Shown in pieces: positions 1 to 3,039 of a DNA stretch of 64,000 nucleotides. Positions within the stretch are counted from its first letter, which is position 1, and each line of letters begins with the position of its first letter. The notes under the pieces were generated by a model. The model worked only from the letters and a program-made list of their open reading frames with translations, did no database searches and was not told the origin of the DNA. Source of the DNA: Macrostomum lignano (Eukaryota); NCBI GenBank assembly GCA_002269645.1, contig NIVC01000052.1:434001-498000 (forward strand), written 5' to 3'. The position numbers were made by a program, and so were the translations under genes.

Positions 1-3000
1 CGAGCGAAGGACCAGAGCACGTAGCAGGCGGCGTCGCGCACGTTGGAGCCGTGATTGCTTTCGCCCGAGCGTTCATCGTACACCTGGACAAGGGGGGTGA
101 GTTAAAAGGGATTTCTTGGGTCACTAAAGCCTTTCAAATCTCAGCAATCCTAGATTAAAAAATATATATTGCTTGAAATTGCAATCCTAGATTGCTTTAT
201 CGAAATCTCACCCCCCTAGAATTCAAATATCGCACTGAAATACCTAAAATCTCACCCCTAGAATTCTAATCTCGCAATGAAATGCTATAAATCTCAGCAC
301 AAAACGACATGCCAAGCCCCCATTCGCCAGCTCACCAGCGACTCCTTGACGGAGGCCAGCACAGCGGGCAGACGGTCAGGCAGCAGGAGGCCCCGCCTGG
401 ACAGCTCAGCGGTGGCCAGGCAGGCTCCATGCCAGGTCTCGTAGCTCTCCAGCCTGTTGAACTTCGACAGCAACGCGTCGACGACTTGGTCGGCCAGGCC
501 GAGGGGCAGCCGGCCGGCCACGCGGCCGATGCCTTTGGCAGCTGACCAGCGCACAATGCTGTCCCGGTTGCTAAGGGCGCCCAGCAGGTGGTCCAACACC
601 GTCTCCACCTCGGGGGCCACCTCAAACTGGCAGATTAGGGCGAATAACCGTGATCTTCTATCTTACCTGATCTACCTGAGCTATACCTGATCTACCTGAG
701 CTATACCTGATCTACCTGAGCTAGACCTGATCTACCTGAGCTAGACCTGATCTACCTGAGCTAGACCTGATCTACCTGAGCTATACCTGATCTACCTGAG
801 CTATACCTGATCTACCTGAGCTAGACCTGATCTACCTGAGCTAGACCTGATCTACCTGAGCTAGACCTGATCTACCTGAGCTATACCTGATCTACCTGAG
901 CTAGACCTGATCTACCTGAGCTAGACCTGATCTACCTGAGCTATACCTGATCTACCTGAGCTAGACCTGATCTACCTGAGCTAGACCTGATCTACCTGAG
1001 CTAGACCTGATCTACCTGAGCTAGACCTGATCTACCTGAGCTAGACCTGATCTACCTGAGCTAGACCTGATCTACCTGAGTTAGAACTGATCTACCTGAG
1101 CTATACATAGGCTATATACCTGATCTATAGCTGATCTAAATCCTACAGATCTACATCTATACAGTTGATCTAACAGCCACTGACCCTTCATCTACAGGCC
1201 CCAATCTACACTCTATGATCAATCCCTCAGTTCCTCACGTCATCTTCCAGCTCCTCCTGCTCCTCCTCATCCTTGTCAGTGGCGGCAGCGGCGCTAGGCT
1301 GATTCGGCGCAAGATTGGCGACCAGAGACCGGTGGCCGCGCTTATAGCGCCAGGCTGCCAGGCGTTGGCGCAGGAAGATGGCGCCAAGGCGCTGGATAAG
1401 CTTTGCGCGCAGTTTATTGAGCAGGCCTTCGGTGTGCCGCGCCAATCGCTGGCAATGGCGCAGGGCGCAGGACAGCAGCGGGCCGGCGTGGGGCAGCAGG
1501 TCCTCCCTACGGCCGAGTTTGCACAGCAGGCCGAGGCTGCGCAGGAGGCCGCAGTGCTTGTAGGTGTCAGCGTAGCTCTCCAGCGGCCACGAGTCCAGCC
1601 GCTCGATGGACCAGGCCGCGAACTCGGCCAGTGAAGCGCCCGGGCGGGTGTAGAATCTGGGCATTGGGGATATGGAGACATTCTAACGAGATCAAAATAA
1701 ACCACTGAAATTTTTAAGTTAAAAAATCGAGCAATTAGGAACGTTGCTGAGATAGCAAGGCTCAAGGGTGGAGTTGCTGAGATGTCAAGGCTTACGGGGG
1801 GGAGTCGCTGAGATGTCAAGGCTCACGGGGGGGAGTCGCTGAGATGTCAAGGCTCACGGGGGGGAGTCGCTGAGATGTCAAGGCTCAAGGGTGGAGTTGC
1901 TGAGATGCCAAGGCTCAAGGGGAGTTGCTGAGATGCCAAGGCTCAAGGGGGGTTGCTGAGATGCCAAGGGTCAATTGTAAGTTGTTGGTAGGCCAAGCCA
2001 AAGGCAGATCAAATGGAAAAGTATGGCTTAAAGGGAGGCTTTGATGCCTCAGCTCACGGAGGATACGGATACCTTAGGCTGGACAGTTATGTTTCAGGTA
2101 CGCCTTTTATGCTTTAAACATCATTTCCTTCGGATACTACTAACAATAGCAACTGTACAAGGTCAAAACCTACATGTAGTTTACTCAAAAAAAATTCACT
2201 TTGCCTTTGTTGCCTACTCAACTCTCTAATAGTCAGGCATGTTACACTGTTTTGGCCCTCATGAATCGCACGACTGCCCCCTGGCCAATTTTTGCAGGTG
2301 AGGTCTCACATCAAGACACACAAGACCTCAATAAGATAAAAGTGTCAGTCAGTTCGCACCTGGCCAACAGGAAGCAGGCGGCCTCCTGCTGCATGCCGCC
2401 GCGGCAGGCGAACTCTCTGGCCAGGCTGTCAATCCGGCCTGCCACCGTGGCCTCCGGCGCTCTCCCTACCGACTCTGCGGCAGCGTCGAAGCGAGCCAGA
2501 TCGAACGGGATGAGCACCACGGTGGACAGCCACAGCAGCAGACAGCACAGCGTGTGATCCGTGAGCTTGCCAGACCGCCTGTCTAGCAGGTCGAGGATGA
2601 GCACCAGGTCGGAGGCTTCGTGCGGCATCCGCCTAGCCGAGGACTTGTAGCCGCGAGTCTTCAGCACTAGGTGCATGCAGTGCGCGTTGCCGGCTAGCAG
2701 GGTGTCCGGGATGTCCGGGCCCAACTTGAACCTGGCCAGGCAGTCGCCTAGCAGGCGGTCCAGCACCGGGTCCAGCATGTGCGGCTGCTCCTGGAACTGG
2801 TCCAATGTGTACTTCAGCCGATCCAGCAGCACCTCCATGGCGTGCTCGTCCGCGTGATCCCGGTCTAGGCGCGGGCCCGCCAGCTCCTGCGCCTCCGCCA
2901 GCATCTGCCCGGCGTCCAGCAGGCAGCCGGTGTGCACGTCGCCGAACCCTTCGTCATCGTCTTTAACGGCGGAGGCTGCCGCCGCTGCTGCCGATTTGGC
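1..3000 (-). CDS. TBCD: Tubulin-specific chaperone D (tubulin folding cofactor D), 5' part; gene continues beyond position 1
   Basis: Exons 3000-2360, 1656-1239, 626-336 and 83-1 join in frame through GT-AG introns. Conserved motifs: [84 protein letters not shown]. No in-frame ATG at the 5' end of the first exon (see findings). Confidence 0.95.
655..1105. repeat. 20-bp minisatellite (CTA[T/G]ACCTGATCTACCTGAG)n in a TBCD intron
   Basis: About 22 copies of a unit made of two related 10-bp halves. Confidence 0.95.
1740..1972. repeat. 27-31-bp minisatellite (GCTGAGATGTCAAGGCTCACGGGGGGGAGTC)n in a TBCD intron
   Basis: About 8 diverging copies; reverse complement of the AGCCTTGACATCTCAGC motif dispersed at 7870-8820. 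Confidence 0.85.
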
Positions 3001-3039
3001 CTGGATGAGAGAGCAGGTGCTGGGGTTAGCCTGGGTGTT

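Follow-up and report, generated by a model that had tools for sequence, protein, structure and literature searches.

The DNA analysed here, called the window, is a stretch of 64,000 nucleotides (nt) from the flatworm Macrostomum lignano (NIVC01000052.1:434001–498000 of GCA_002269645.1, assembly Mlig_3_7), in which window position 3000 corresponds to record position 437000. Near its left end two genes are read from the minus strand: the 5′ part of the gene for tubulin-specific chaperone D (TBCD, cofactor D), and a DNPH1-like gene 1.7 kb upstream of it. The subject of this study is the source of the initiator methionine of TBCD, whose conserved reading frame opens directly behind a splice acceptor. 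Coordinates of the features are collected in Table 1; below, a slash between sequence letters outside brackets marks a splice junction.

The gene is TBCD. An exhaustive HMMER search gave one 100% match, PAA92417.1 (record title 'BOX15_Mlig022662g5, partial [Macrostomum lignano]'), along with 496 TBCD homologues at E ≤ 1e-30; the locus of PAA92417.1 in GCA_002269645.1 is the window, base for base. Pfam assigned PF25767 (ARM_TBCD_2nd) to the TBCD fragment in the window with E = 1.9e-10 and PF23579 (ARM_TBCD) more weakly, with E = 1.7e-4, below the family cutoff. The full-length protein carries PF23579, PF25767 and PF12612, and the UniRef label for the window protein is TBCD.

Read on the minus strand, the upstream boundary of the first coding exon runs ...cccaggCTAACcccagcacctgctctctcatccAG/GCC AAA TCG GCA GCA GCG..., so that the candidate branch point CTAAC (3029–3025), the acceptor AG (3002–3001) and an exon opening at 3000 in phase 0 with GCC AAA TCG are all present as the first-pass annotation of this DNA had described them. 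The pyrimidine tract cacctgctctctcatcc spans 3019–3003, and the pyrimidine fraction over positions −20 to −3 is 0.78 at the 3000 acceptor, 0.72–0.78 at the three cis acceptors of TBCD and 0.39–0.56 at other nearby AGs. CAG acceptors of 75% pyrimidines or more that have a CTRAY element 18–45 nt upstream occur only 9 times in 128 kb (both strands). Because such sites are so few and this one coincides exactly with the onset of TBCD homology, it is not a chance feature. The frame is shut 15 codons upstream by the TGA at 3048–3046, and on the minus strand there is no in-frame ATG between that TGA and codon 33 (2904–2902), matching the earlier estimate that the first in-frame ATG lies about 32 codons in. 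A scan of 9 kb upstream returned no phase-0 ATG-bearing exon with a donor above 6/9 consensus positions, in agreement with the earlier report of none. The genome itself would be without a usable start for the conserved TBCD N-terminus.

Alignment with eight full-length homologues places the residues before codon 33 on a conserved GLGCALxxFxExxEV block, which upholds the earlier impression that an acidic patch upstream of the first ATG matches the TBCD N-terminus; codon 33 itself falls within the conserved motif GLGCALxxFxE. In 68 full-length homologues the initiator methionine stands a median of 63.5 residues from the invariant YQEQP motif. This distance would be 70 residues here with a methionine placed before the exon, and is 37 when counted from codon 33, a value of 37 or fewer being found in 4/68. 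Judged by this conservation, the N-terminus upstream of codon 33 is really coding. Codon 33 is a poor start, since it lies within a conserved motif, is too close to YQEQP and comes after an ATG in another frame that has A at −3. Ribosomes without an in-frame 5′ AUG would meet that ATG (2957–2955) first. A homologue search with the N-terminus itself was empty in two runs and in a third gave only proteins shorter than 500 amino acids (aa; best 55% identity), with neither Macrostomum relatives nor RNA-derived fragments among them, from an index that did not return the 1210-aa TBCD itself.

Table 1. Positions of TBCD, DNPH1 and associated features in window coordinates.
Feature	Position	Strand	Remarks
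TBCD first coding exon	2360–3000	−	phase 0 at 5′ end; 3′ donor AG/GTGCGA; 100% identity to PAA92417.1; Pfam ARM_TBCD
TBCD exon 2	1239–1656	−	matches P0001
TBCD exon 3	336–626	−	read from sequence
TBCD exon 4	1–83	−	gene continues past left window end
Candidate branch point CTAAC	3025–3029	−	24 nt before acceptor AG; kept in both paralogous loci
Pyrimidine tract and acceptor cacctgctctctcatccAG	3001–3019	−	AG 3002–3001; proposed spliced-leader trans-splice acceptor
In-frame TGA	3046–3048	−	shuts TBCD frame upstream of acceptor
First in-frame genomic ATG, codon 33	2902–2904	−	context gggcagATGC; within conserved N-terminal motif
Out-of-frame ATG 2957–2955 (A at −3) with 30-codon open reading frame	2865–2957	−	overlaps codon-33 ATG
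Rival cis element ATGATCCA/GT(AAGT)	3719–3728	−	in frame only with weak AG 3021–3020; out of frame with 3000
Tandem repeats (31-nt, 12-nt and GACA units)	3040–3614	−	occupy presumed outron directly upstream of acceptor
Foldback/MITE-like element, long inverted arms	4012–4690		between DNPH1 and TBCD
DNPH1-like gene (Nuc_deoxyrib_tr)	4711–5163	−	ATG 5163–5161; acceptor CAG there in two paralogous copies

A spliced leader as candidate source of the start codon

M. lignano has a single 35-nt spliced leader (SL), CGGTCTCTTACTGCGAAGACTCAATTTATTGCATG, which ends in ATG and is trans-spliced to ~30% of genes (PMC8629364). This species conforms to the general property of flatworm leaders, invoked by the first-pass annotation, that all of them end in AUG (PMC12582326). 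The final ATG of the Macrostomum leader is likely a translation start codon according to Wiberg et al. (PMC10468722). That the leader AUG serves as initiator in Schistosoma was shown by Cheng et al. 2006 (summarised in PMC9851317): over 40 cDNAs need it, and in the S. mansoni survey it was in frame in 28% of the transcripts that receive the leader. Going by that summary and PMC12582326, donation of the initiator AUG by the leader is established and common in flatworms.

Messenger RNAs were assembled in silico with the leader joined at 3019, 3000, 2987, 2984 and 2975. The leader end reads ...TTATTGCATG, and the exon continues as GCCAAATCGGCAGCAG from 3000, CAGCGGCGGCAG from 2987, CGGCGGCAG from 2984 and CCTCCGCCGTT from 2975. 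Joining at 3000 gave M-AKS..., open through the whole exon, which bears out the earlier proposal that the leader AUG followed by GCC reads M-A-K-S in frame; joining at 3019, 2987, 2984 or 2975 gave short out-of-frame open reading frames (ORFs). The 3000 site is the sole in-frame junction among the five candidates and has the best pyrimidine tract among them.

On evidence that is indirect, but in which each part of the earlier interpretation open to test was favoured, we regard it as probable that the initiator AUG of TBCD is donated by the leader joined at 3000. The TBCD pre-mRNA would be co-transcribed with DNPH1, which lies on the same strand, or transcribed from just downstream of DNPH1, and would be trans-spliced at the acceptor AG 3002–3001. 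The 35-nt leader ending in AUG, followed by GCC AAA TCG, would then provide a start codon for complete cofactor D, whose first residues would be M-A-K-S-A-A-A.... The analysis shows the anatomy of the sequence, its source organism, how the frames relate to one another, that the N-terminus is conserved and that public models lack Met; the junction at 3000 and the use of the leader AUG are what we infer.

Public gene models have the form expected if the start codon was removed along with the leader. Methionine is absent from 5/5 TBCD models that reach the N-terminus: PAA92417.1 begins AAAASAVK and its paralogue PAA86793.1 begins SAVK, both flagged 'partial'; A0A1I8GJ14 begins exactly at AKS and A0A1I8JL86 at IQAKS; and A0A1I8FH57, from an older annotation, is a 574-aa DNPH1–TBCD chimera (window about 5160–1239) that is spliced into the 3000 acceptor as ...VVTNE/AKSAAAA. 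Among the N-terminal entries of the 90% UniRef cluster, which has six members, none starts with methionine. For the Mlig_3_7 annotation, which used the RNA-seq sets SRP082513 and SRR2682326, the leader was trimmed from reads and transcripts, and transcriptional units were cut at SL peaks (PMC5730564). Trimming removes an ATG donated by the leader, hence the 'partial' flags on the TBCD and DNPH1 models. The gene ids Mlig022662 and Mlig013381 had no mention in the literature searched.

The setting is operon-like. Of the 1.7-kb spacer between DNPH1 and TBCD, a foldback element takes up 679 nt and tandem repeats 575 nt, which leaves ~0.46 kb of unique sequence; the published operon threshold is a repeat-adjusted spacer of less than 1 kb (PMC8629364). 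The DNPH1 and TBCD models have the transcriptional-unit prefix Mlig022662 in common (naming rule in PMC5730564). Given the common strand, the adjusted spacer and this prefix, it is plausible that TBCD occupies the downstream place in a unit resolved by the SL. The foldback element at 4012–4690 has nested inverted arms of 17–68 nt with 77–88% complementarity; it diverges more between paralogues (2.4%) than its flanks do, and it supplies an 'exon' of the chimeric A0A1I8FH57.

Several observations weigh against a leader junction at 3000. The NCBI coding sequences (CDSs) of TBCD start inside the exon and not at 3000, by 15 nt in the window copy (2985) and by 27 nt in the paralogue (equivalent of 2973). 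An mRNA beginning directly after AG 2989–2988 would fit the 2985 start, and one beginning after AG 2977–2976 of the window copy, a site at which the paralogue itself has AT, would fit the 27-nt start; leader junctions at either AG would be out of frame. The 3000 acceptor has the TNCAG core of the trans-splice motif [T/C]TNCAG and, with A at −6, fits that motif only from position −5. With T at −3, the leader AUG is in a weak context. The TBCD acceptor differs between the paralogues by just two pyrimidine transitions, a conservation that is uninformative because the copies are ~99% identical throughout. Ragged assembly ends seem to us a likelier cause of the inner CDS starts than splice sites: mapping of the reads was end-to-end, the two copies disagree, and for the third copy there is just a C-terminal model. 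Minor out-of-frame leader junctions inside the exon may also occur.

Other ways to start TBCD

Three alternatives to a leader-donated AUG were weighed. Translation could begin at codon 33 and yield TBCD minus its first 32 residues, a protein starting MLAEAQ, from an mRNA whose 5′ end is a local transcription start or a leader joined at AG 2989–2988, 2986–2985 or 2977–2976 with its AUG out of frame. AG dinucleotides are indeed available at suitable positions, the NCBI coding sequences place the modelled 5′ ends downstream of 3000 (2985 in the window, the counterpart of 2973 in the paralogue), and out-of-frame leader AUGs are tolerated, the AUG being in frame in only the S. mansoni minority quoted above (PMC9851317, on Cheng et al. 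2006). We nevertheless consider this start unlikely. It would cut into the conserved motif and leave the 37-residue spacing to YQEQP that so few homologues have; each such mRNA would contain at least one out-of-frame AUG, and at most two, opening an ORF that overlaps the codon-33 ATG; and pyrimidine tracts are poor at the downstream AGs (0.39–0.50). The NCBI starts on which it leans differ between the copies, one of them without an AG in its own locus, which ragged assembly ends fit better.

An ATG might instead come from an exon spliced in cis, and here the spacer offers two elements, both found in all three paralogous loci. The first-pass annotation had pointed to a phase-2 donor, ATG ATC CA/GTAAGT, and this is present (ATG 3728–3726, GT 3720–3719). 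It had also named an acceptor with which that donor would give an in-frame peptide; the peptide holds, and the position needs correcting, the AG being 3021–3020 and the exon start 3019. In this form ATGATCCA/GTAAGT (3728–3719) has a perfect donor and its join from 3719 to 3019 is in frame, but AG 3021–3020 lies just 4 nt past CTAAC in a context that is purine-rich upstream (pyrimidine fraction 0.56), and joining the 3720 donor, the one strong donor upstream, to the strong 3000 acceptor is out of frame. The second element, ATG/GTGCAG (3857–3852), has its ATG/GT at 3857–3853, ends in phase 0 as the leader does, and would give MAKS... on joining to 3000; GTGCAG, however, is unlike the species donor motif GT[G/A]AG (PMC8629364). 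For a cis-spliced start the junction letters would be ...GGGATATGATCCA joined to CACCTGCTC or GCCAAATCG. Neither exon appears in any public model, all of which are 5′-partial, and one GTAAGT per 1.7 kb is about the chance expectation. A comparison of the paralogues was set aside as a test of these exons, since at 99% identity everywhere their conservation is uninformative. A cis-spliced start of this kind is, in our estimate, improbable.

The remaining alternative takes the chimeric model A0A1I8FH57 at face value, with DNPH1 and TBCD translated as a single protein by way of cryptic spacer exons. Its frame does stay open, as ...FLARLK/TEDAQQ...VVTNE/AKSAAAA, yet it evades the DNPH1 stop codon through a donor 4 nt before that stop, places one exon inside the foldback transposon at 4012–4690 and translates intron minisatellites as protein, which are typical features of a gene-finder chimera. 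The newer annotation keeps the two genes separate, and we give a real fusion almost no weight. A leader-donated AUG at 3000 is the reading we retain.

The upstream neighbour DNPH1

The DNPH1 copies allow a comparison at a presumed trans-splice site. Where the window copy has ATG (5163–5161, minus strand), the paralogous loci have CAG, at 7875–7877 in L002 and at 8993–8995 in L003, in the contexts ttttCAG/TCGAGC and cttCAG/TCGAGC, both of them full [T/C]TNCAG matches. The window and L002 copies differ over 526 nt (the 453-nt CDS and 73 nt upstream) solely by two adjacent bases. In all three copies, the window copy included, the annotated CDS is 149 aa long, 'partial' and starts at TCG without methionine; in the window this happens despite the ATG, presumably through mapping of SL-trimmed reads to every copy. 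An exact look-up found the 149-aa Met-less form on record, while the 150-aa DNPH1 with methionine was not on record. The letters CACATTTTATGTCGAGC are specific to the window copy.

A leader AUG joined to a paralogous copy would yield MSSQQLK..., as translation from the window ATG does, and the window copy would thus encode the AUG that the other copies receive from the leader. That the ATG might be an artefact of polishing the assembly with RNA was considered and rejected: an SL-derived correction would turn positions −4 and −5 into GC, and both are still TT. Neighbouring DNPH1 paralogues with CAG at the acceptor position and a Met-less CDS lend support to donation of the AUG by the leader at TBCD. 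In each of the three copies the annotated DNPH1 CDS opens right at the junction, unlike the two TBCD CDSs, which begin 15 and 27 nt inside exon 1.

Somewhat short of even confidence, we suggest that the gene pair may amount to a natural experiment, with TBCD relying on the leader AUG in three copies and DNPH1 in two. The acceptor in the window copy would have been turned into a genomic ATG by two adjacent substitutions, a directly observed 'hard-wiring' of an SL-donated start between homeologues that stem from a recent whole-genome duplication, or else the change would have run in the opposite direction. The CAG/ATG difference between the DNPH1 copies hints at a route into or out of dependence on trans-splicing, and it is the more unusual item of the two, the TBCD case being one more instance of a mechanism known since 2006 (Cheng et al.).

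Known systems and further content of the window

The TBCD locus resembles the described cases of SL-donated initiator methionines in flatworms in that the leader ends in AUG, a phase-0 acceptor abuts conserved coding sequence and the genome offers no in-frame AUG for the full-length protein. It differs in organism and gene, here TBCD of the free-living macrostomid M. lignano, and in the kind of evidence, namely genome anatomy, annotation and homology, whereas the original work had cDNAs and translation assays. A further likeness is to the slORFs of slORFfinder (PMC9851317), ORFs that arise by leader addition, have no start codon outside the trans-spliced mRNA and are hence missed or called 'partial' in annotation. 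Ribosome footprints revealed those of nematodes, Oikopleura and trypanosomes, which often use near-cognate codons, while TBCD would use a canonical AUG for its main conserved ORF. Trans-splicing and operons in M. lignano have been described by Wudarski et al. 2017 (PMC5730564) and by Ustyantsev and Berezikov 2021 (PMC8629364), and the present pair has the same genome, one-strand arrangement, adjusted spacer below 1 kb, common unit name and CAG acceptor; the leader AUG as start codon and the TBCD locus are not discussed there, and trimming of the leader together with its ATG leaves a 5′-partial CDS.

Current understanding is not overturned by this case. It would extend a mechanism documented for the most part in parasites to a conserved, essential housekeeping gene of a free-living flatworm. 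If SL-donated starts were recognised, gene models of this kind could be completed genome-wide, and the design of transgenes in M. lignano, where transgenesis is established (PMC5730564), must provide an ATG or an acceptor accordingly.

An Rfam scan found no SL RNA or any other family in the window, and the M. lignano leader sequence, allowing up to 3 mismatches, was likewise absent from it, as expected for a dispersed SL gene. Minisatellites are very dense (665–1103, 1743–1974, 3040–3614, 5233–6500 and much of 9700–63400) and contain many long spurious ORFs. Examples are a 20-nt unit repeated 22 times in TBCD intron 2, a 31-nt unit repeated 7.8 times in intron 1, units of 31, 12 and 4 nt in the outron, and a 32-nt unit repeated 39 times upstream of DNPH1. 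Other ORFs were named by eye from their translations. On the minus strand they comprise a GPCR-like ORF (26223–27143), a retrotransposon reverse transcriptase (33742–35013), a nuclear-receptor-like ORF with a low-complexity repeat interruption (51473–53551) and AMP-deaminase-like exons (59707–61130). On the plus strand, 36875–37489 reads as a single-exon GST that has an ATG of its own and a leader resembling a 5′ untranslated region.

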